Source: Pelomyxa schiedti
Lineage: Eukaryota > Protista > Evosea
Reading direction: 5' to 3'
Length of the DNA stretch: 64,000 bases
Assembly (NCBI GenBank): GCA_020536535.1
Contig: JAHLWZ010000824.1
Coordinates: 1-64,000, forward strand
A program made the translations under genes and the position numbers. How positions within the stretch are numbered: the first letter of the stretch is position 1; every line of letters begins with the position of its first letter. This document shows, piece by piece, positions 5,574-55,611 of the stretch. The notes beneath the pieces were generated by a model. It was not told the origin of the DNA and did not search any database. It worked only from the letters and a program-made list of their open reading frames with translations.

Positions 5574-5845
5574 AACCCTGACCCCCAAACAAACGAATCA
5601 AGCCCAAAAAAACAACCCCACACCAATAACCATTGCTTCTCTCTCCTTGAGAGGGATGGAAGTTTGATCACCAACAGCACCAACAGCAACCTTGGACTGC
5701 CAGCACTCAATTCCTAATCGCAGTTGACACCTCCGGCATTGTGTTGGGCCAGACACCCACCTCCAGCAACATTGAAGGCCCGGCACCTCCCCCTGTGCCT
5801 TCGAAGGTTACTATTCTCACAAAACATATTGGGGTTTTCCGATTT

Positions 5846-5933
5846 GGGTGAATAAAATAATCAACAGACCGAACGCTGTCCTTTTCCTTATCGTCGCTCA
5901 GGATCGGCTGTCTGGTGTTTTTTTTATTCACCC
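5846..5933. repeat. 88-bp inverted-repeat (MITE-like or hairpin) element, family A
   Basis: Arms GGGTGAATAAAATAATCAACAGAC ... GTCTGGTGTTTTTTTTATTCACCC, flanked on both sides by ATTT. Homologous to 40018-40105. Confidence 0.85.
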
Positions 5934-6084
5934 ATTTGATGATGTTTGCGGCATTGTACGTTTCAGTCGTGTGGTGTTTCGTGAATGGAGGGTAGCCTTG
6001 TTTTTGCTTTTTTGCACAGCAAGTTTCATAGAAACAACATGGTGTTCACAGTGAGCCAAATGCGTTGTCATTTGCGCGGCGCAC

Positions 6085-15267: not shown

Positions 15268-15319
15268 GGCTGAATATCAACAGACACCGTTGCGGTCTGT
15301 TGATTATTTTATTCCGCCC
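15268..15319. repeat. Internally deleted variant of inverted-repeat family A
   Basis: GGCTGAATATCAACAGAC-accgttgc-GGTCTGTTGATTATTTTATTCCGCCC, in the short divergent gap between 15240(-) and ~15350(+). Confidence 0.7.
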
Positions 15320-15349
15320 ATTAGAGATGATGCTGCAACGAAAAGCGAA

Positions 15350-16653
15350 ATGCCGTCCCAACAACAAAATAAACCCCAGGTCGTTGCAGATCTATTGTTG
15401 GGTTTGATTCGTCAACATAGATATCTATGCAGGACACATACAGAGACCGGTAACAAACGTGGTAGGAACGATGACGAGCAAATCAGCAGCGGAGACAATA
15501 CTAGTAGTAACTGCGAATCATGCTCAAAGAAACCGCGTGTGGACTTACCTTGTGTTCGCAAACATGACGCGATGGCCCAGGCAACTGTATCGCTTGCCTT
15601 TGCTTACTTGGACAGTTTGGCATTCAAAGCGGAGCAGGTATTTTGAATACTGTTGGAAATAATTCATAACTTAGGTTCACTGTCAAAGAACACGAAGGTG
15701 GTTACAAGCGAAATCGAGCAATTGACGGAACTGGAAGGCTATGTGACAAAAAAGATCAAAGACAAGATAGCCGAATTGAAGGAGCAAGCACAGAGAAATC
15801 TAACGGTAGTTCCAATTTAGGCTTTGTTTGTAACACTCAGCTTTTTCTCAGAACTCACTCGAGAAGCTCCTAACCCTCAACGGCACTCAGTTTTCTGAAA
15901 AACAGACAGTAATTCATTCTAACTCCTTTGATGCCCTCATAACTCACTTCCTTGAAGCTCTTGTACCCTAGAGGCTGGATCCTGGAGGAGTTAGATCGTA
16001 CCTTGGAAAACACACTCAGTAACATTTCCATTGTCTCTGGTACGAGTGCCAAGCAAACCCTTTCTCAATTAACACAAATAGGAACACGCATTTTAGACCT
16101 TCCCCACCATATTTTGGTGCATATTGTGGAGTACTTACCCCCCAAATCTGTTCTGGCTGCTCGCTTGGTGTGCCTTGACTTCTGGACTGCTGTATGTGAA
16201 GGTTTGGGTTCCTTTAATGTCACTGAACAATTTAACCGTTCTTAAACAGCCACAAGAACTGAATGTACATTGGAAACGTTGGTTGAGAGATATGGGGAAG
16301 TTTGGCAGCTCATGGATTGCTGCACTGTTAGTACCCCCACGGCAGACTTCTGGTTCCAGGTTACAGTGCAGTCAACCGGCTTCACTGTTAAGTATTGGGC
16401 TGAGGAAATGAAGCTCTATGCACAAGCCAAGCACTTCGCAATAGAGATAACGGACTCACGTCACAAGAAGACTCTGGCACAACAGGAGTTTGTGGCACCA
16501 GCCTCTGAGCAGGCGGAAACAGGCCACGGCACAGTAGATATGATACCCCTGAGTCTGGAGTCCTGGTGCAGCAAAGTACCCAGCAAGTTCCATCTCAGAA
16601 TCGATGTTACAGACCACTTTGCTGAAAACTCCCGCCTCAGACCCCTTGATTGA
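15350..16653 (+). CDS. F-box protein, tandem copy 1
   Basis: F-box ILDLPHHILVHIVEYLPPKSVLAARLVCLDFWTAV. It has an N-terminal coiled region and a C-terminal beta-rich domain ending FHLRIDVTDHFAENSRLRPLD. Confidence 0.75.
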
Positions 16654-16860
16654 TTGATCGGTGGGAAAACACAAAACGGGAAAAACGAAAGATTGGAAGA
16701 AAGAACATTCTGGCAAAAACTGAAAACTGTCACCAGTTCCCAGCAAACTTACAAGTTGTAGTGAAGTGACCTGAATTTTGGATAGATTCTAATCACGCCG
16801 GAGTGTCACAAAAGTGGTATATTTTTTTGGCATTTAGTCATTCTGTAAGCAGCGAGATCT

Positions 16861-17878
16861 ATGCGGGCCTCCAGAGCCAACACAGATCCTTTGCATACAA
16901 ACCAAGCTGGAAACGACAATGAACAAGACAGCAGCCGCATAGTCACTACTACTAACAACAATCCCCCACGATGGCTCCTGAACAGGCCCGTGAGCCGTGC
17001 CCCAAGAAACCACGTGAGGAAGTATCCTTCATTCACTGCCATGATGACGTGGCCAAGTCAACTGTATCACGTGCCTTTGCTTACTTGGATAAACTTGCCT
17101 TTGAGGCCGAAACGGTTAATGGTCAACCTTGTAATTAAATCTAACATGACTTCTCACTTTTCAGAGCACAAGGAGGTTACTAGCGAAATTGAGGAGTTAC
17201 AGGAACTTAAATCACACGTGAATGAAGCTATAGACGTGAAGATAGCTGAATTGAAAAGTAAAGCACAAGGAAATCTCCAGGTATCATCAGAACTGGTTTT
17301 GTTTGGTTAACTCATGAGAAATAGAACTCACTTGAGAAACTCAGGAACCTCAATGGTGTGTTTTCTGAAAAGCAAACAGTAATTCAACTTTATCGTATTT
17401 TTTGCACTGAAGGGATTTTATCCGAAGCTCTTTTACCATAAAGACTGGATACTTAATCAGCTACATCAAGCCTTGAAAAACACCCTCAGTCACATTTTCA
17501 TTGTCAGTGGTATGTGCTCAACAACCCTTTTGAAGTTAACAGAAAATAGGAACTCACATTTTGTCCCTTCCCCACCTCGTTTTGGTGCAAATTGTTGGGT
17601 ATTTACCCCGAGAGTCAATATTGGCTGTCCGCTCCGTGTGCTTTGACTTTTGGAAGGCTGTCTGTGAAGGTTTTTACCCTATTAATTAACAACTGTGACT
17701 GTTAACTTGGTCACAAACAGCGACAAGACATGCCGTTACATTGTGTACTTCTGTTGCAAGGCAGGACAACTCTTGGCTGCTCATTGATTACAACGGTGCA
17801 TGTACTCCAACAGCTGACTTTGTATTCAGTATTAGTGCGGAAACCAAAAATGTTGCGACCCTAAAAAAAGTGCACTGA
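16861..17878 (+). pseudogene. F-box protein, tandem copy 2, 5' part (interrupted)
   Basis: Colinear with copy 1, with equivalent introns (KKPR..RAFAYLDKLAFEAE; ILSLPHLVLVQIVGYLPRESILAVRSVCFDFWKAV; TPTADF). It ends abruptly at ...KK GTG CAC TGA. Confidence 0.75.
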
Positions 17879-17995
17879 CGATTTGTTCCCTGGTGGCGAC
17901 CCCGAACACGACACATTGGACGGAGTAATGGACGCACTCCACAGACAACGAATTGACTACTACTTGAGATACGCCAATGTACGAGAACAATGACA

Positions 17996-19840
17996 TCAAT
18001 TTAAGCGGGATACTTTTACAAGGGCCCCAAATATATCCTCAGGTGTATCTCCACCCCTGTCGGCAGATATTGGAGCAATAAAATTGCTTAAATCTGTTGT
18101 TATCCACAAGATGGAGGGAAAAAAAAATATCTCGAGGAAGGTACCAGTTACACTCTCTGTAAAATCCAGAGTTTGGAATCTGTTCGTGTCAGTAATATCA
18201 CGGTATCCCACAAAGGCGAATCTCTTTGTAGAATTCGGTAGCCGAGCAGATATCTCTGTGGCCAAAGAGTTTACAATAGCTTTGGTGTTGTTCAGCCAGT
18301 GGCTCTTTGAGCCGGTGGCGTTATGAAAAGATAAATTTTGGCATTAGTAACTTACCATGGCAAAAGCAATATCTACTGAGCTGGAGTTGGGAGAAAAAAT
18401 TTGGGCCACAGGCCTGTGACCTGAAAGTGATAAAATGAGAAAAATGGGAAGTATTGAAAGGAATCACTTGGAGAGAAATATATCTGAGTGGGAAAACGAG
18501 CTTCACGACAACACACAAAAACTACTGCAGCTGTCCCACCGTAATTTGATATCCCTAAAAATGCATTACTTAATTGGAGAGTTTCTTGGATGTACCTGAA
18601 GAAACACATTGGGGGAATCAGTGAAGCTCACATCACGACTTTCAGACCACAAAATGGGGATTTGGGCAGTCTCTTGTGTACTTGAAATTGGCTTTGAGAC
18701 TGACCCTATTTTTTTATGATACAGTGGTCAAAGTTTAGTGCATCTCCTGCTCTTATCAGAGTATCAAAAACATTGTCACAGAACTCAACACCTCCAATAA
18801 CGATCTGCTGAAGCCTCCAACAAGAAAAATTCTAGACAGTCCCACAAGCACTGGTGGTAATAACAACTCCCGAGGTGCCATGACTTTTTCAAAGCATGCA
18901 GTAATGAGACTAAGTACTAATGAACCCTGACCCTGGTCGAAGTCTAGCCCTGTATTGGACTGTGTGTTGTAGTGCTGAATCAGATCCAAAATGGGAGTTT
19001 GTGTAGGCCCCCTCCTGTATAGATATCCCGCAATATTAATCGTTACAGACTGCACTGTTTCATTTGGCTTTCTGTTGGCTTTTATCCTCTTTTTCTGGTA
19101 AGTTTCTATCAAGTTGAATTGAGTTACCTCGATTGCCTGCATTATCTCACAAAGAACGTTGGAGGATTGCAGTTGAGTTATTTCATTGGCCCCAAAAAGC
19201 TGTGTGAATTGGATAAATGTTCCAGTTTGAAAAAGGTGCACATACATTCTTGAAAATAGAAGGTTTTATCAGTTCCTTTACTCCATTGGTACCCACAATT
19301 TGATGTACTATTATATCCACAGTACCTCCTCCAGTGTCAATAACCATATCTGGAAACAAGGTAATGCCATCTTAGCCTTACCAAATACATCTTGGGAACC
19401 ATTCCTGTGTTAGTAGTGTAACCTACTTGGAAATCTATGTAGAGGCAAAAAAAATGCTTGAGCTGTTGTTGGGCAACTTTGGGGGTCAAACCAACTCTCT
19501 ACCCAAAAAACACAAGAAAATTCTGGATCTGGTCTGGATGGTGTCAAAATCGTGTCGAATGAGAAGGTAGTACAGAGCTGTGAGCAGTGTTTCCCTTGGT
19601 TCCCAGTGAAAAAGGAGGCTGGGACTGAGGAAACCCAAAAGTGGTGGTAACTGGACGGGTGCCAGAAAAAAAAAGTACAATTTTCTGGCACCCAGACCAG
19701 ATTGTATCATTCTCCTAAATTGATTACAAAAAACCTGTTGGGGTATGTGGTAGTGCATAAGAAGTTGTGGCATGATAGTTTCGAGGTCTAACACATCCAC
19801 AGTCACCATTGTCCCAAAATATAACATTGGCTCCACATTT
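17996..19840 (-). pseudogene. Degraded HSPA12-like (atypical Hsp70) + vWA fusion gene
   Basis: Hsp70 motifs MVIDTGGGTVDIIVHQI (~19270-19350) and IFLVGGFSRS. vWA (vwkA-like) motifs RFAFVGYRD..F..LDFT and GGDTPEDIFGAL. Frames are broken and the gene is truncated at ~17996. Confidence 0.7.
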
Positions 19841-19936
19841 CAACACCCCAAATCCTCTTCCACCAAAGCTTTCTTCTGAAAATTAGAATTCCACAAGGGG
19901 TAATCTCTTCTCTGGTGAAGTAAGACCATACATTTT

Positions 19937-20490
19937 ATGCAACAACTCAGAAAGAGAAGATTGAAGACTGTGCACAAATTGACTGAAGGTGTGCTCAGGG
20001 CAGCTGCTCATTGGTCATATGACCAGCTGAAAGCAGCTGAAAAAAACTGTTATTTCATTCGAGTGTCACTGAGGAGCAGAGTTTATTTTCTGAGTTGTTA
20101 CACAACTTCAGTGCCAAAACCACCAAAAAAGGGTACAACAGTTTTTTTTTTGTTTTAACTGTTTATAGCTATCTGGGGATTTCTCATTTCTCTTCTAAAT
20201 TGCTGGTGACATTACAAGCTGCACTGCATCTCACTGACACAGACCTACAGCTTGCAGGAAAGTCATCTGCAAATGCACAAAAGAAAGCCATCTCTGACTG
20301 GGCTGCAAAAACTGGAAACATGGAAACAACAAAAACAGCAGTGGCTTCTATCAAAGAAAAGCAAGCACAAGCTGTTCCTCAGCACCAGCCACACAAACAC
20401 AGACCTTCAGCTTCACAAGTGGCACCCATTCCCAAGGAGACTGCCACAGCACCTCAGCCAAAACGACCCCGAAAGCGGACCACATGTTAG
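19937..20490 (+). other. Unidentified coding fragment with a basic C-terminal tail
   Basis: Open frames with an intron-like interruption, ending PQPKRPRKRTTC*. No recognisable domain or start. Confidence 0.3.
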
Positions 20491-20671
20491 TAACTGATTT
20501 CGCAGAATGGTACAATCTACAGCGTGGTGTCAAAAACCAAGAAATTGGAGTTATTTGACCCCCAAACTTGAGCAACCCAGGTACGATGCAAAGGAGTTGT
20601 ATGTAGTCAATATTATTTTTTGCACCTATTTTTTTAAAAAAAACCGTTTAATCGTCCTTACTGTCCTGTAG

Positions 20672-23521
20672 GCTTTAGTACCTCACAACGATTTGATGAT
20701 AGTGACGAAGAAGTTCGCGACCAACGTTGACCCGAGACATGGACTATAATACCACCAGATAGACCCAAACCAACACCAGCAGCAGTACCATGTGGTGTTG
20801 TTTTCTCATGGGGTGCTGGTTCTCACGGCCAACTCGGTCACGGTGACTCGGTAGAGAGGCATGTATAGGCTCCTCTTTTGTTAGTATTCTTTATTTTTTA
20901 TTTTTAATTTTTTTTTGGTTGTGGGTGATAGGTACCGGTGTATTGAATCTTTTTTTTTTTTTTTTTTGCTATTTATTTGTATTTTCTCATTTTTTTATGT
21001 ACAGGCAGTGCCCAGCACTTGTTTCTACGTTATTTTCATCTAGGACACCCGCACAAGCTGTATCATGTGGGGGTGCTGTTACTTTGATTTTATCTGCTGC
21101 GGGTGAGGTTTTTTCTTGTGGCGGAGGTGGCAGCAGCGGACCATCACCTACTCCCACTTTCACACCAACTCCTACCCCTTCTGCAACTAAATCCACACCC
21201 CCTACAAAATCCACTCCTGCAACAAAATCGGCACCTAAGAGTGCATCTTCTGCTCAGGCAAACGCTGCAACACCTTGGGCTTGCCAAGAGAAGCCCATCC
21301 CCTGGCCTGTAGTGGGGTATGGTATTACCCCTTGCTTTTGTTGTGCTAATTTCCAATTAGTTTATATGGTCATGTAATAGCTGAAATTGCATGCGGAGGT
21401 ATGCACTGCCTTGCAATTGAGGCATCCCCTGTGAATGATGTGTGGATGTGGGGTGAAATTTGCGGCAAGCCAGTTGCTCCTACTGTTGTTCAATCACTGC
21501 ATCCATCACCAGAAACACTGTCACGTCCTGCCCACATCAGTGCTGGTGGAGCTTTTTCTGTAGTTGTTTGCTCTGATGACAGTGCATTTTCATGGGGCAC
21601 AAATTCCAAAGGGCAATTAGGATTGGGTGACACTAAAGTGCGCTCCTTCTTTTCAGAAACCGAGGATCCAGTCTCAACAATAATAGGATAGAGAAACTCC
21701 TCAGCAAGTAAGGCTTGCCCAGCCAATTAGGAAAGCATCGTGTGGTGGGCAACACGTGGCATATTTGACTGAAATTGGGGCCGTTTTTACTTGTGGTTCA
21801 AATAGGTATATGAGTAAGTGTAATTGGGCGACCGAAGATAACAAATAGGTTCGGACAGCTTGGACTTGGTGATGTGATTGACAGAACAACTCCTCAGCCA
21901 GTTACCTTGACCCCAGGAACCCCTGCCATAGAAATTATTGCTTGTGGTGATAATCACACTCTTCTTGCCACTGTGCCAACCTCCAACGCAATGGGACTCT
22001 ATAACATGGTACTAGCAATGGGAAGAAGAGGGCAGTGCGGCATCAATGTTGACCAAAATATCCTCATTCCAACATGTGTTATTGCAGTACTACTTAGTGG
22101 AATGATAGTTAATGCAGACCACTTGAGACTTTCAATACTGAGTTGTGTGCAAATGCTGACCGGGTTGTATCAATGGCAGGCAATGGAGCATTTAGTGCAG
22201 CACACAGTGCGATAGTTACAGATGCAGGAAGACTGTTACCCTGTGCCTGTTTTGAATTTTAAATTTGACCTATCACAGGTACACTTTTGGATCCAGTAAA
22301 AATGGGCAATGCGGCCAGTTTTTGAAACAAGATTATTCCGTTCCAACCCTTGTTGAGGCGTTTGAAAGGGCTCACACCAACATTAAATCTGTACACCAAT
22401 TCTCAGCAATTCAGCTCACCAAAGTTGTAGGTATCCTGTGGATGGATGCATGCCGCAGCAGTGTCAGGTGGCTCTAGTTCAATGACTAGGATCTCTCATC
22501 AGCAGCAGTTGATTTTTGGAGACTTTTTGCATCCCTGTCGAAGTTATTCGAGATACTTTAGCTTACCTGTGTGCCAAAGCTTGTTCTATTCTAAGTAAAG
22601 GAAAGAAGTAACATTGCACAGGATCTTATTTCCCTTGGTCGAACAAGCAGTGCGTTCAGAGTACTAGCTTCTTCTAACGAACTTTGGAAGAGGCTTTTCC
22701 TCAAGTTCTTCTTTTTTATCTCTCCTTTGTGTGAGTTACTCTTGTAGAGATATTAGATTTCCGCCCAACCTGGAATGGGAAACCAGAGAACTTTCCTCTC
22801 CAAATAGACGGATCTGCAAAATTGCACAAGAATTGATTCCAGAAAACCTGTACTTCACAATTATTGAATAATCTTTTCATTCAAAGCAAATAAGGGCTTC
22901 CGGGTCAAGTTCACTAAAAGACCAAGAGATATGGAAGCTGAGATACCTGATGAACCACCCATCAACTAACCCTTACTATGAGAGGTTGACATCACATCAG
23001 GTCTAGTGACAATTTTAATCAATTTAGATTGAGGAACAGAGATGATGATGAGGCTCGGAGGCCGTCTCTCCTTTCACGAGCTGCGTCGGCCACTGCATCA
23101 ACTATGAAAGCATTTTTACCAAGAAATAAAGAGTATCGTGCTTTAATGGTTGGTGTGTAGTTCCATATCACCATTTTAAACTTTTGACGATTCAAGGTTT
23201 GGATGCTGCTGGAAAAACCACTATTTTGTACAAAGTGAGTATTCTTCCCCATTACAACTGCCAACTGGCAATGATCTAATTTTAATGTTTCAGCTCAAAT
23301 TGGGAGAAGTTGTCACCACAAGTACAGCCCAGCTTCTACCAGACTTACCACAAATAACATCACTTAAGTTCCAACCATTGGGTTTAATGTGGAGACAGTT
23401 ACATACAAAAACGTCAACTTCACAGTTTGGGACACTGGTGGAGGTATTTCCCATTCTTTCTGTTATTGGACATGGAGTAATATGGAAATCAGAGGACAAG
23501 ATACGACCTCTGTGGAGACAT
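20672..23521 (+). pseudogene. RCC1-repeat + F-box + Arf GTPase fusion, disrupted and 3'-truncated
   Basis: RCC1: VFSWGAGSHGQLGHGD, FSWGTNSKGQLGLGD, TFGSSKNGQCG. F-box: IPVEVIRDTLAYL..FRVLASSNELWKRLF. Arf: [58 protein letters not shown], with nothing further. In-frame TGA at ~20728 and an apparent frameshift at ~22525. Confidence 0.8.
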
Positions 23522-23751
23522 GTGCACCCTCATCCAACCTAACAACATTTTGTAACTCTTTGATACCCAACAACAAAAAACCACCACCCACCAAGAACAA
23601 CAAATTCATAATACCACACAAGACCCATTTGAAGTGTGATGCACTGTGGTCAATGACCAATTGTGAAATTAATGATGGACTTTCTTCATTTTATTTTTGT
23701 TCAACCTTGTTATCCATAAACAGTTAGCCACACTAAAACTATGGAGTATTT

Positions 23752-26269
23752 TCAAGAATGGTTTTGTTGGTTGGGCCTGTTGCTAAGCACATCCAAGGCA
23801 GATAGCCTCTGGGTGTGGTCTGGGTGAAGCATGCCCTGCAATATGGCAATGGTTTGAGGTCGGTAGCTGATCACATCAGGCCGAAGGGGTGGTAACATGG
23901 ACAGTGTGAAATCAGATTGGCTTCTATTGATAAGTGCCTGTGGGTTGGTGCATAGCAACTTCCAGAACACCATTGCAACTGCAAAAGAGTCAGCATTCTG
24001 GTATGGCACAACTGTGAGCCTGCTTGCTCCCGTGTCCCTTTGAGTTAGAGCATTGAGGTTTGCATCTTCAACCAGCCTGGATATATCAGGTGGTAAGGTG
24101 AATGGGTTACCCCATGCTTCCTCCCTTGTGAGGTCGATGCTCACTGTCATCTGTTGGTTATGTTCGGTAACAACAGAGAGGCCAAAGTCAATGAGGGAGA
24201 GGTTAAGTTGGTTTGTGCCACCCGTTGTTGTGCTCACCCTGACCAGAATGTTATCACCCTGAGGTTTTCATTACCTTCATTTGTTACAGTAAATTGAGGT
24301 AGAACAAACTTTAATGTCTCTGTGGACAGTGAAATTCTTTGTCAGGTGAGCAACTGCCAATAGGGCTTGTTTCAACAGAGAAATGACTTCACTAATGGGT
24401 GTGCTTGGGTTTTCTGCAAGGAACTTATCAAGTGTAGTCCCTGTAAGAAAAATGAACACTTGGCATTGCAATGATTTTAATAAAAAAAACTTACCACCAT
24501 GTGGCATCAATATAACCAGTGAACGTTGCTGAGACCACTCAGCGTAAACTGGGTATTCTGTTTATGGTAAACTGTGCTGGAAAAAGATAGTCACTTACTA
24601 ATCTTGATTTGTTGAATCCATGATTCAGGAAGAGTTGCAAAGAAAGTACATATTGGGTGTAGAATATTTTTGTGGCTGGGTAGGAAAGATAGGCTTCTAA
24701 CTTCACTTCGGTATCTATAAAAATTAACGTCAGTAGGACGGCAAAATTGAGGTGCTTACTTGTTTCGTATTACTGTTGGAGATGGATTTTGAGTAGCTGA
24801 CATGTCCATCATGAATTTGAGGCAAACTTGAAATGGAATTTTTGGATGCTTTGCTGAGAAAACTGCTCCATATGACCCACAGGATAACAATTGAACGGAG
24901 TTAAATTGTTGGATTTCTAACATCAGGCATGCTCGGGAGAGTACTTCAAATTTTGAGCATTCTTCAAATTTCCTTGTTGCAAACACATTTGAAAGAAAAA
25001 CGCAAAACCTTCACTAAGACAATTTAATCTCACTTTAATTTCGGCATTTTCTTGGCTAACTTGTTGATATGAATGAGACTTCATTTTTATAAACACAAAG
25101 GTACCTTCTTCGAGATCATTCAATCTTTGGGCTAGGTCATTGATTTCTGGAGAAAGAGTTAAGCTTGTGGTAAGGGCGATATCTTATATAGCAAAAATTA
25201 ACAAGTGCGAATGTAGGAGGAGACTTCTGGTGAAAGAGATTAAATCTCTATCATCTCTTTATTTATTATACTATACATACTACAATAAAGTAACCTCTGG
25301 TACGAGTCTGAAGGAGTTTTTTCAATTCAGCATTTTCTTGTTTCGTTCAAAACAATAAATTGCAGAAAGAGAGGAAACCTTGTCTAAGTTCGGCATTTTC
25401 TTGTTCAATTGCATGGAATGTAGGGAGTTTATCCACATTTGATTCCGCTTCAATCTAGTTTTCAGTTAGTGGGTCACAAACCCAACCCTGTTTCATGGTC
25501 ACACCTCTACTTGGGGTGTGACTGGTACCTCTGGTGCCAGTGGTTTTGTTGCAGATGTTTTTATTGCTTCGTCTAGGTTGTCATGCACCCACTGCAGGAA
25601 GTTGGCACGCCCGCCCATTGCCTTATATACCTCTTCCTCACTTTCCTTATTTACTTTTCCACCATGCCGAAGTATAAGCTGTGCACTCTTCATGTGCCCA
25701 ACGAGTAGTGCCTTGGCCAGTGGTGTTGTAATTGCTGGGTGGGTTAAATTTTCATATCCCAGCCTGTTTACATCAGTTCCTGGGTGTGACAGCATCACCT
25801 CCACCATTCCTGCCCTTTCTTTACAAGTTCCACCACTGTGCATCGCAGCATGAAGTGGACTGTATGACCCCAGTGCACCACGCGCCCCTTTGTTTGGGTC
25901 AATTCCAGGACATGCAAGTAACTGAACAGCAACACCAGGCACGTCGAACATGCAGGCACGCCAAAGTGGTGTATCACCCCCAGCATCAGCCTGATTAATG
26001 TTTGTTGCCGTGAGTGGCTTATGTGGATGTGGAGGATGAAGTAAAACCATTGCAACAGAACCACTCCCAGCCTCGTGCAACAATGAACTGTAGTAATAAC
26101 TATTACTTTCCCATCTGTACATTGAGTGTATGTCAATGTTGGGGTTATCCTCAAGTAACCGTGTGACCAACTGTGCATCCCCGTTCTTTACTGCTTCCTT
26201 GAGTGACAATAAATTGTCCCTCAGTGCGGGCGCCAAGTCAGACATTTCGACTGACGGCTGTTGTCCCAT
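23752..26269 (-). CDS. Ankyrin-repeat + coiled-coil + protein kinase
   Basis: Ankyrin repeats GDTPLWRAC, YSPLHAAM and TTPLAKAL. Repeated QENAE(L/I) coil. Kinase motifs LSCGSYGAVF, VCLKFM, HRDIK/GDNILV, LIDFG, DSFAVAMVFW and ML.PD..QRLSA. The N-terminal MGQQPS may be myristoylated. Confidence 0.85.
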
Positions 26270-26402
26270 TGTGGTAGTGGAGGTTAATTACACTACGGGG
26301 GTGTATCACCAAGAAGTGGGGAGGCCAACGGGGGCTCAACCAGGTTGGATCTGTTCAGATCTGTTCAACAGGTTTTGAAAACTAAGTTGATGAGGGGCTC
26401 AT

Positions 26403-26661
26403 GTGCACCAACGTCCAAATTGGGCCCTCTATGCACAAGCCAAGATTTTCGCAATCGAGATCACTGATTCACACAACTTTCTGTTGGCTCACGCAGAGTA
26501 TGTGATACCAAGTACACACCAGGCAGAGCTGGCCCTCAACGCAAGAAGTGAGTGCATACATCTAAAATGTCAACACACCCAATATGCCATTGAACAACTT
26601 CTTCACCCTCCGCATCGAGGTCACTGACTACTTTGACGCACACTCACCCTATGCCCTCTGA
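26403..26661 (+). pseudogene. F-box copy 2, displaced 3' part
   Basis: LYAQAKIFAIEITDSH..LAHAEYVIP and (after a frameshift) FTLRIEVTDYF align with copy 1 LYAQAKHFAIEITDSR..LAQQEFVAP..FHLRIDVTDHF. Confidence 0.8.
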
Positions 26662-26779
26662 CTTGCGTAAAAATACTCCTTGAACCCACAAACAATGATA
26701 GGATAACTGGCTTGTTTTTTCTTCCCCTGGTTCCAACAGCTAAATACAAAAAAACCAAAGGAAACAAAAAATTCTTCAT

Positions 26780-28474
26780 TTATTTGATCAAACTGGAGTG
26801 TATACATATGGCACAGTGATGTATGTTTCCACAATCAGCAGCGTGAGTGTAACCAAACACCAAGGAATCTGACAAGAGATACTTCGACAAGTTGCTTGAG
26901 GGAATCAGCAGGTCCCAGTTCGGGTTGTTGTTGCTCATTTTCCTTATGAACAACATACCAGCCGGCCCTTTCATGTCTTCTCCCTGGTTTATACGCAACA
27001 ACGCCTGTGCAATTGTGAGATTGGGAATAAACTATGATACGAATGTGGCATACCTTTGCAGTCCATCCAGGTTCCCACTTCACTAGGCCATCTCCGGCAT
27101 AGTCTCAAATGGAAAACGCCCTTTGGTGAGTGTAAGAAAATTGGGAAAAGTAAAGTTTAGAAATACCAGGCCAGTGTTAATCGAGGCAGCACACAGACCA
27201 TCTGACGAATCACAGAATCTAATAAGCATTCCTTTTGTAGGTTTTTCAAGCAGAAGTGCTTCAGCCTCCTTTCTCCCAAGGAAACCAAAGTTCGATCCTC
27301 TTTTGCGTTCGTAAGATTGGAAAGAAAATAAAATGAACACATACAATGAAGCCAACTCATCAATGGCCTGTTGCCCAATCTGGAATTCTTCAATCGGTGA
27401 AGAGAGTAAGGCACAAATTTGCATCCAACGTTTTTGTGAGATACAATCTCCATAATCACAAGCTGAGAATCATTAATAAACTACAACATTATTGGTTGAT
27501 TAGTACCATTGAGGTTCCCCCAGGAAGATAGATCAGCGTGGAATACTCCTTTTACATTCTGGATGACACTGATCCACGCTATTTTGGACGCGGTTCCCTG
27601 TGACATAGCAGCCCAAAAAGTTTCCGGTGTGAAGAAGAGGCCTGAAAGGATCGGCGAGGCAGCAGGAATGGCGACAGGGCACGGCGATTGCATCTTTGGA
27701 ACCCCTTTGATAAGGACAGTGAGATAACGAATAAATACGTGCTGGAGTGATACTATAAACGATGCCAAAGTGAGCAAAGCAGTGTTGAACAGCGGACCAC
27801 TCATACAACATGAAGGAGTACCACTCCTTTTCCGGTGTTTGGGTAAGAGAGAGTAGCACCAGCCTGATGTATAGTGGTTGTTCTCCACCTAAAAAATATT
27901 TAAGTTCCTTGTGTGCTATAATAAAATTAATAAAAATTTTCCGCAATAATCCCAAATAATAAACAAATTACATTCATTAATGCACAAATAAATTCTTGAA
28001 TGGGATATGTAACATACTTGCGATATTTGTTCTTGGTTTTGCAACAAGGTATTGGCCGCCGCAGAGGGCAACTCTACCGGCTGTCCCATAATCCGCAGAT
28101 GCCTCGGCGCTCTCCCTGAATATGCCCCACAGAGCTGGATCGATTGACGGTGCCCAGTACGTGTCACAGGGCATTCCTCGCTCGCCATTGTACCTCACGG
28201 TCTCGAATAGAGCTCCCAGGCAAGCTTCCACGCCCATAATCACCTCTTCACTGTAGTTGTAGATGTAGTTAAACACCACGGTATCGTCACCCTGAGGATG
28301 ATTTCCATTTTGTTGAGCCTGGCTGTGGTGCTGTTGATCGCCAATTGTGGGAAGCGTTGGTGTCGTAGACATCGGCATTTTAAACGATGAGACCAGAGAC
28401 ATCGTGAGGGTGTTGGTCAGGTGCTGCCGTGCTGCAGTGGCAGTTATGGGATAACCCATTTGTGCTGTTGTCAT
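26780..28474 (-). CDS. SH2-domain-containing protein
   Basis: NFGFLGRKEAEALLLEKPTKGMLIRFCDSSDGLCAA is a STAT-type SH2 core. Multi-exon; the N-terminal domain is unidentified. Confidence 0.7.
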
Positions 28475-28564
28475 TTTCAGTGTGGTGACAGAGAATGGAG
28501 AATGGTGTCGCTTTTAAGAGAAACTGGACAACCTGGTCGCTTGATACCTGGCTTTTTTTTTTTG

Positions 28565-39786: not shown

Positions 39787-40017
39787 ACAGTGACGCGGGT
39801 TTGGTGGATATCCAGGTTGATGTCTGCCCCTACCTCTCGGAGATCAGGCTCATTACGCCCCTTTCCCACGAAGGTGGGGCTCTGTACCGGTTCCGTTTTG
39901 CAATGTGACTGTTGTTGTGATCTCCACGGTTGCTTCATGTCCCTCACTAATATGGACCATTGACGTTCTGAAAGCCCCTCAGGGCGATTTTACCCCTTTT
40001 TCCCTCTTATCCCATTT

Positions 40018-40105
40018 GGCTGAATAAAATAATCAACAGACCGGAACGCTGTCGTCTTCGTGTCATCGCCCAGTCTCGGCGGTCTGGTGTTTTTTTTATT
40101 CAGCC
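40018..40105. repeat. 88-bp inverted-repeat element, family A
   Basis: GGCTGAATAAAATAATCAACAGACC ... GGTCTGGTGTTTTTTTTATTCAGCC, flanked by ATTT on both sides. Confidence 0.85.
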
Positions 40106-40423
40106 ATTTAGAGACATTAAACCGCAACATAATGATCCATGTCAGAGAACAAGTTCCAAGAATCATCGGGAAACTTAGTTCTGGACAGAGCCGGCCATTC
40201 ACAGGAACGGCCGGAGTGTTCATTCTAATGGCCTTTCCTTGAATCCCCCGCCGTACGTAGTATATTAATGACCACTGGCAATTCTGCCATCAGAAGGACC
40301 CAACTTGGCGCATGTGCGGGTGGTTAGTCGTGCGTTAACACAAATGTTGTTGTGGGGCACAGAATCCACGAAATTGAAAACACATTTTTTGTGTTGCTAT
40401 TTTGCAATATCAAAACTCTTAAA

Positions 40424-55446: not shown

Positions 55447-55611
55447 GGTATTGGACGTTTCAGTCAAAAAACGGCATAATGAATGAAAAATAAAAACAAC
55501 CAACAAAAAACAAGTTTATCCACTGGGCGCACCAGTGCATTTCGTTTGATTTTGATGATAGTTCTCGTTTTTTGTTTGTGTGGCGGGTTTTTGACTGAAA
55601 CGTCCAATACC
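55447..55611. mobile_element. 165-bp MITE-like element with perfect 24-bp terminal inverted repeats (family B)
   Basis: GGTATTGGACGTTTCAGTCAAAAA (55447-55470) and TTTTTGACTGAAACGTCCAATACC (55588-55611). Non-coding AT-rich interior; no TSD seen. Confidence 0.75.

Follow-up and report, generated by a model that had tools for sequence, protein, structure and literature searches.

A multi-gene insertion in an F-box exon of Pelomyxa schiedti: structural variation of a known type that includes a nested hAT-like element

Introduction

Templated insertions at DNA breaks can be complex, and in RPA-defective yeast two inverted pieces of one locus, 30-119 bp apart, are common among them (PMC11724301). 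In grasses, filler-DNA repair is cited among the ways in which genes move (PMC3445842). Among transposons, Pack elements are defined by the TIR-element sequence that flanks them (PMC8277862; PMC6446971), and hAT5 elements are defined by target-site duplications (TSDs) of 5 bp (PMC12730594).

The locus described here is an F-box gene of Pelomyxa schiedti whose coding sequence is interrupted by a block of intron-containing DNA from several other genes. The block is real and is a single structural variant; its kind is known, and a hAT-like element is nested in it. Copies of this locus in P. schiedti thus differ by multi-gene presence/absence blocks.

Materials and methods

The window is the whole stretch of DNA that was analysed, 64,000 nucleotides of P. 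schiedti (C824:1-64000), and it contains no Ns. Genome searches covered the assembly of 52,367,397 bases in 5,337 contigs, and the proteins matched in searches bear Pelo_ names. The P. schiedti genome was obtained from seven single cells by phi29 whole-genome amplification and co-assembled with SPAdes (PMC8887013). For the read test, contigs from two DNA runs were placed on window positions 20900-26850. Since both runs are filed under one sample, their origin from separate cells is likely rather than certain. The depth of a read contig is not a copy number, and amplification is uneven; depths are therefore read only as indicating that the insertion is a minority form.

The interrupted gene and its empty site

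Two F-box genes lie in tandem on the forward strand, and the second of them holds the insert:

15515-16653 (approximate limits), + strand: F-box copy 1, the tandem paralogue (self-BLAST; Pfam F-box)
16971-17846, + strand: 5' half of F-box copy 2; 17846 is the final base common to the empty-site contigs
17847-26430, no strand: insert in the F-box exon, 8,584 bp, replacing 42 bp, with no TSD, TIR or Helitron ends
26431-26661, + strand: 3' half of F-box copy 2, continuous with the 5' half in the empty-site contigs

The two copies are about 69% identical by self-BLAST. The initial annotation had proposed that copy 2 is split, with its C-terminal half returning about 8.6 kb downstream, and the genome search bears this out, because uninterrupted forms of the gene are found on two other contigs, C1368 and C2285. 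Identity between C1368 and the window is 97% over 15379-17846 and then 94% over 26431-26715, and that of C2285 is 91% on the left side and 93% on the right. Both contigs run from the 5' half directly into 26431-26661, which assigns this C-terminal part to copy 2 and rules out the candidate reading of 26403-26661 as a third paralogue. The same two contigs fix the junctions: homology to the empty site stops at 17846 and restarts at 26431 (or at 26427, with the copy-1 sequence as the ancestral form), and 42 bp of F-box exon present in the empty site are missing at the insertion.

The junctions decide the fate of the hexamer GTGCAC, which had been proposed as the TSD of the block and as a site used repeatedly. 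It is indeed present at 17870, 23522 and 26403, as annotated, but the junctions placed there lie instead at 17846 and 26431. Since the insert is 17847-26430 with 42 bp replaced, both outer hexamers lie within it, each more than 20 bp from its end, and GTGCAC is absent from the empty site on C1368 and C2285. An in-frame join at the hexamer, giving 24 residues, had been taken as restoring the gene; it is made of insert DNA and its frame is due to chance, the empty site encoding 21 residues between DF and L(Y/H), as copy 1 does. The gene sequence of the cargo itself accounts for two of the three hexamers, and the claim of a reused site is not supported. Positions 17870-17875 are native vWA codons (x-C-T), with the hexamer at the homologous place in the paralogue C1069, and the copy at 23522 is the end of the Arf WRH exon plus the intron GT, all Arf paralogues reading TGGAGACAT immediately before that GT. 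Two random 40-bp windows have a 6-mer in common in 24% of cases. The GTGCAC-TSD model for the outer block is thus refuted by the empty site. Restriction-site or library artefact at the palindromic hexamer was also considered and is ruled out, the junctions not being at the hexamer.

The 5' half of copy 2 differs from C1368 by 2.7% in substitutions over 17170-17847, and the flanks of the empty form differ from the window by 2.6-4%. C1368 and C2215 align with the window over about 15330-28482 and not beyond; the empty form may therefore be either an allele or a segmental duplicate.

Several further observations concern this region. Upstream of about 15330-15379 the empty-form contigs no longer follow the window, and at 28482 they stop. 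On C1368 the upstream part (C1368:1-4411) is 4.4 kb of unrelated DNA beginning in a repeat. The divergence may reflect a second rearrangement, or else a segmental duplication that includes the F-box pair. Window positions 15941-17170 (about 1.2 kb) show zero differences to C1368 while both sides differ by 2.7-4%, which may be a collapsed assembly or gene conversion. A hairpin-like small repeat family, about 100 bp long and 86% alike, occurs at 5835-5937, 40007-40109 and 15283-15318; the last is a partial copy that lies shortly before F-box copy 1, near the point where C1368 diverges. The public gene model Pelo_11756 (KAH3756414.1, 701 aa) spans 16971-21845 and joins the F-box 5' half, the vWA piece, antisense HSPA12 DNA, a transposon ORF and RCC1 exons; it is probably a prediction artefact.

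Contents of the insert

From left to right, the insert contains the following features:

17847-17856, no strand: filler of about 10 bp at the left junction, which may be eroded intron of the vWA gene
17857-17995, + strand: vWA exon piece, 139 bp, inverted relative to the rest of its own gene (alignment to the paralogue C1069)
17997-19355, - strand: remnant of an HSPA12/Hsp70-like + vWA gene, 5'-truncated (alignment to C1069, 77-88%)
19480-20564, + strand: non-autonomous TIR transposon, 1,085 bp, with the 11-bp TIR TGGGGGTCAAA; a deletion derivative of a 4.0-kb hAT-like element
20696-23521, + strand: RCC1 + F-box-like + Arf gene (RCC1 by Pfam, Arf by motifs and paralogue alignment)
23752-26269, - strand: ankyrin-repeat + protein kinase gene, apparently intact (Pfam Ank, kinase weakly)

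The order and identities of the cargo genes given in the initial annotation stand, with Ank and RCC1 recognized by Pfam, the kinase weakly so, and HSPA12, vWA and Arf identified from motifs and from alignments to paralogues. What had been listed as an unknown fragment is the transposon derivative. Pfam returned no match for the HSPA12 and vWA pieces, which are named from motifs.

About 100 bp of the HSPA12-vWA gene are missing between the inverted piece and the remainder. The remnant carries at least five internal deletions (10-266 bp) as well as frameshifts, and its weak homology may extend to 19479. Its divergence from C1069 (dS 0.27, dN 0.09) is far above that of the flanks, so the remnant is not a fresh copy of C1069. 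The RCC1-F-box-Arf gene has lost 1 bp from exon 1 and breaks off after the WRH exon, without the C-terminal half of Arf. It shares intron positions with the paralogue C843 at a dS of about 1.8 and a dN of about 0.2, which together indicate long evolution as a separate functional gene, and its GT-AG splicing is seen in RNA contigs. The ankyrin-kinase gene has the catalytic motifs and an open exon path, and its 3' part is GT-AG spliced in RNA contigs.

As a side observation, the C843 paralogue (C843:22276-24495) appears complete, with RCC1 repeats, an F-box-like motif and an Arf GTPase in an intron-rich gene. RCC1, F-box-like and Arf in one gene is an unusual domain combination.

A donor for these pieces had been expected elsewhere in the genome. 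The piece-by-piece search of the assembly yielded no intact donor locus and no near-identical sequence, only old paralogues at 69-88% DNA identity, and no gene order is common to the block and the fetched paralogue neighbourhoods. A gap in the assembly may hide such a donor. With none present there, copy-paste and cut-paste movement fit alike.

The nested transposon

The element at 19480-20564 is flanked by the 5-bp TSD AACTT (19475-19479 and 20565-20569) and is about 95% identical to most of its sibling copies. Its end matches number 54 in the genome versus 3 in the control, and nine of the ten full-length copies of the family have a 5-bp TSD. The family is characterized by TG..CA ends, 11-bp TIRs, 5-bp A/T-rich TSDs and copies of 0.47-4.0 kb. 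The longest, on the minus strand of C791:157113-161112, contains broken ORF pieces with FDES, GDN, CxxH and TRW motifs that are hAT-like. Pfam is blank on these transposase pieces; their Atlas neighbours are FAM200/ZBED5, DUF4371 and Dimer_Tnp_hAT at 0.82-0.86, below 0.9. The transposase-like protein has only 7 matches among 1.8 billion representatives, the nameable ones being Pelomyxa proteins, and the searches returned no relatives outside Pelomyxa.

Short TIRs, the 5-bp TSD and the hAT-like motifs of the 4-kb copy are all features in common with hAT5. The element differs from hAT5 in its TG..CA ends and in a transposase without a Pfam match, whose placement among hAT elements is by motifs and Atlas scores below 0.9. 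Judged from these sequence features, the family may represent an independent hAT5-like lineage in Archamoebae.

The possibility that this transposon interrupts the first RCC1 exon is ruled out, since the ATG is at 20696, downstream of the transposon. Elsewhere in the window there is a palindromic MITE of 161 bp (55449-55609), of which a second copy, 98% identical, lies 12.6 kb further downstream on this contig (L038:4008-4169).

Ends of the insert and read contigs

The outer ends of the insert show no inverted repeat when the outer 150 bp are compared (local score 17), and neither a Helitron 5' TC nor a 3' CTRR is found at them in either orientation. There is no trace of a repeat family at these ends, and the terminal sequences are single-copy in the genome. 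The initial view of a DNA-level insertion of intron-containing host DNA that lacks its own transposase and terminal repeats is supported.

In each DNA run a single unbranched 5.9-kb contig with zero differences covers about 20540-26460, at depths of 20 and 26, and no branching of read contigs occurs over 20540-26430 in both runs. The contig crosses both the Arf/kinase junction and the right junction, which gives read support to the contiguity of the annotated block at these two places. For the left junction and the inversion at 17996 support is indirect and comes from the outer flanks being halves of a single exon and from the matching TSD copies on either side of the nested transposon. The empty form merges with the insert form at 26431, where depth reaches 77-78.

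Origin of the insert

The insert is probably 8.6 kb of ordinary chromosomal DNA that was inserted at a double-strand break in F-box copy 2 by repair, and not by a transposase acting at the ends of the block. The loss of target sequence, the filler, the lack of a TSD or TIR, the single-copy ends and the inverted end piece from the same gene all argue for capture during double-strand-break repair. Under this scenario, a double-strand break would have formed in F-box copy 2 on one haplotype, or in one segmental copy, and end-joining or template-switching repair would have pasted in the 8.6-kb stretch, with the break ends losing 42 bp and a filler of about 10 bp being added. At its left end, the incoming DNA would have been left with the 139-bp inverted piece and about 100 bp missing, as after a template switch. 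The captured stretch would comprise the decayed HSPA12-vWA gene, most of the RCC1-F-box-Arf gene and the ankyrin-kinase gene, and the hAT-like element may have jumped into it before or after the move. We infer the repair pathway, the number of events and the origin of the inversion during capture.

One feature counts against a single capture event, which leaves it unexplained, namely a direct repeat around the kinase gene:

23519-23528, + strand: left copy of the 10-bp direct repeat CATGTGCACC, equal to the Arf His codon plus the intron GT donor
26400-26409, + strand: right copy of the same repeat, 21 bp within the right end of the insert

There is also a weak inverted match of 14-15 bp between 23527-23541 and 26383-26396, just inside the repeat copies. 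These features raise the possibility of two steps: repair brought in the outer block, and the cassette at 23529-26399 entered the Arf intron in a nested insertion of its own. The cassette would then be a Pack-MULE-like element with short TIRs and a 10-bp TSD, or would have integrated at 10 bp of microhomology, for example from a circle. This history is rather unlikely, and it complements repair capture more than it excludes it. The length of the repeat fits MULE TSDs, which measure 8-11 bp (PMC6446971). Near two breakpoints that were defined independently of each other, a perfect repeat of 10 bp is expected by chance in 1% (240 x 40-bp windows) or 0.1% (40 x 40) of cases, and 0.25% of random pairs reach the inverted match inside both repeat copies; both chance tests, however, were picked after the repeat was seen, 63 10-mers are repeated within 8.7 kb, and the inverted match overlaps the 10-bp repeat and owes part of its score to a local hairpin. 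Genome-wide, moreover, the end motif is found at this locus only, the right end has no second copy, and the flanks of eight kinase/ankyrin paralogue loci have no sequence in common beyond the level of shuffled sequence. Nor does either side of the repeat match the intron of the paralogue, continuation of the Arf intron on either side being not significant, and no form that skips the cassette appears in the read contigs of the two DNA runs over 20900-26850.

In its strongest version, the nested-insertion reading makes the cassette an element without a transposase, with degenerate TIRs of very short length and a TSD of 10 bp, which brought a complete kinase gene, still transcribed today, into the Arf intron; this version is improbable. 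A transposon family behind the cassette is also a long shot, less likely than a nested insertion as such. If the strongest version holds, the cassette would represent Pack-MULE-like capture of a gene in Archamoebae, and it could be among the drivers of the expansion of the Pelomyxa ankyrin-kinase family. Across the genome CATGTGCACC has 139 sites against 102 for its reversed control, which is near background. As a separate observation, among the first 100 sites listed there are three more same-strand pairs within 3 kb (C77:12392/12613, C109:1652/3877 and C533:18618/21127), where 0.56 pairs would be expected under a uniform distribution; the three pairs may be tandem paralogues.

It is unlikely that a known TIR transposon moved the whole block and that small deletions, among them the 42-bp loss, afterwards stripped away its ends and TSD. 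The genome does contain hAT-like elements with intact TIRs and TSDs, and the HSPA12 remnant shows that deletions have accumulated here, which implies a multi-step history of the block in which later deletions could have erased transposon ends. Yet neither outer end retains any repeat-family sequence, both ends would have been trimmed while the flanks drifted by only about 2.6%, and the sole transposon present is internal with its own TSD intact.

Amplification chimera or mis-assembly is very unlikely, though less settled for the left end. The genome comes from whole-genome-amplified cells (PMC8887013), 85% of amplification chimeras are inversions with a deletion (PMC1855051), which is the pattern at 17996, and both DNA runs belong to one sample. 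Against this, the right and Arf/kinase junctions lie inside the zero-difference contig of both runs at the depths given above, the outer flanks, 42 bp from each other, are halves of a single exon, the internal transposon has matching TSD copies on its two sides, the window is free of Ns, and the cargo has no second location that could have supplied a chimera.

The initial proposal of nested transduplication, in which an unknown machinery would create a GTGCAC TSD and use it again, drew on the three hexamers near breakpoints and the in-frame join; it is scarcely credible, given an empty site without the hexamer, hexamers more than 20 bp inside the insert, a left copy that is conserved vWA coding sequence, a middle copy at an exon/intron border, a 10-mer near background, single-copy ends and no donors.

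Comparison with known systems

The composite of host fragments without a TSD resembles Helitron capture, but the block has no 5' TC or 3' CTRR end. Helitrons insert between A and T without deleting target DNA, whereas 42 bp of target were lost here. Similarity to Pack-MULE and Pack-TIR elements lies in the host gene fragments with introns, the lack of a transposase, the partial transcription and the 10-bp direct repeat of the inner cassette. The block differs from them in having no repeat-family TIRs, no TSD around the whole, a single copy and no parental gene.

With respect to gene content, the block carries genes that are absent elsewhere in the assembly of this strain, one of them apparently intact and transcribed. 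The locus is therefore useful for the study of gene-family turnover and of annotation errors in the P. schiedti genome. It would gain greater importance only if the kinase cassette proves to be a member of a mobile, gene-carrying element family.

The block differs from the templated insertions of yeast in being standing variation in an amoeba and in having no donor left in the assembly, which makes copying only putative. At 8.6 kb it is also larger than most experimental yeast templated insertions. The repair-capture reading nevertheless places it closest to templated or complex break insertions, that is, filler-DNA capture by NHEJ, alt-EJ or MMBIR/SDSA, with which it shares a target deletion without a TSD, a short filler, several gene pieces, an inverted pair from the same locus and retained introns (PMC11724301; PMC3445842). 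As such, it is mostly ordinary structural variation by a mechanism already known from yeast, plants and humans.
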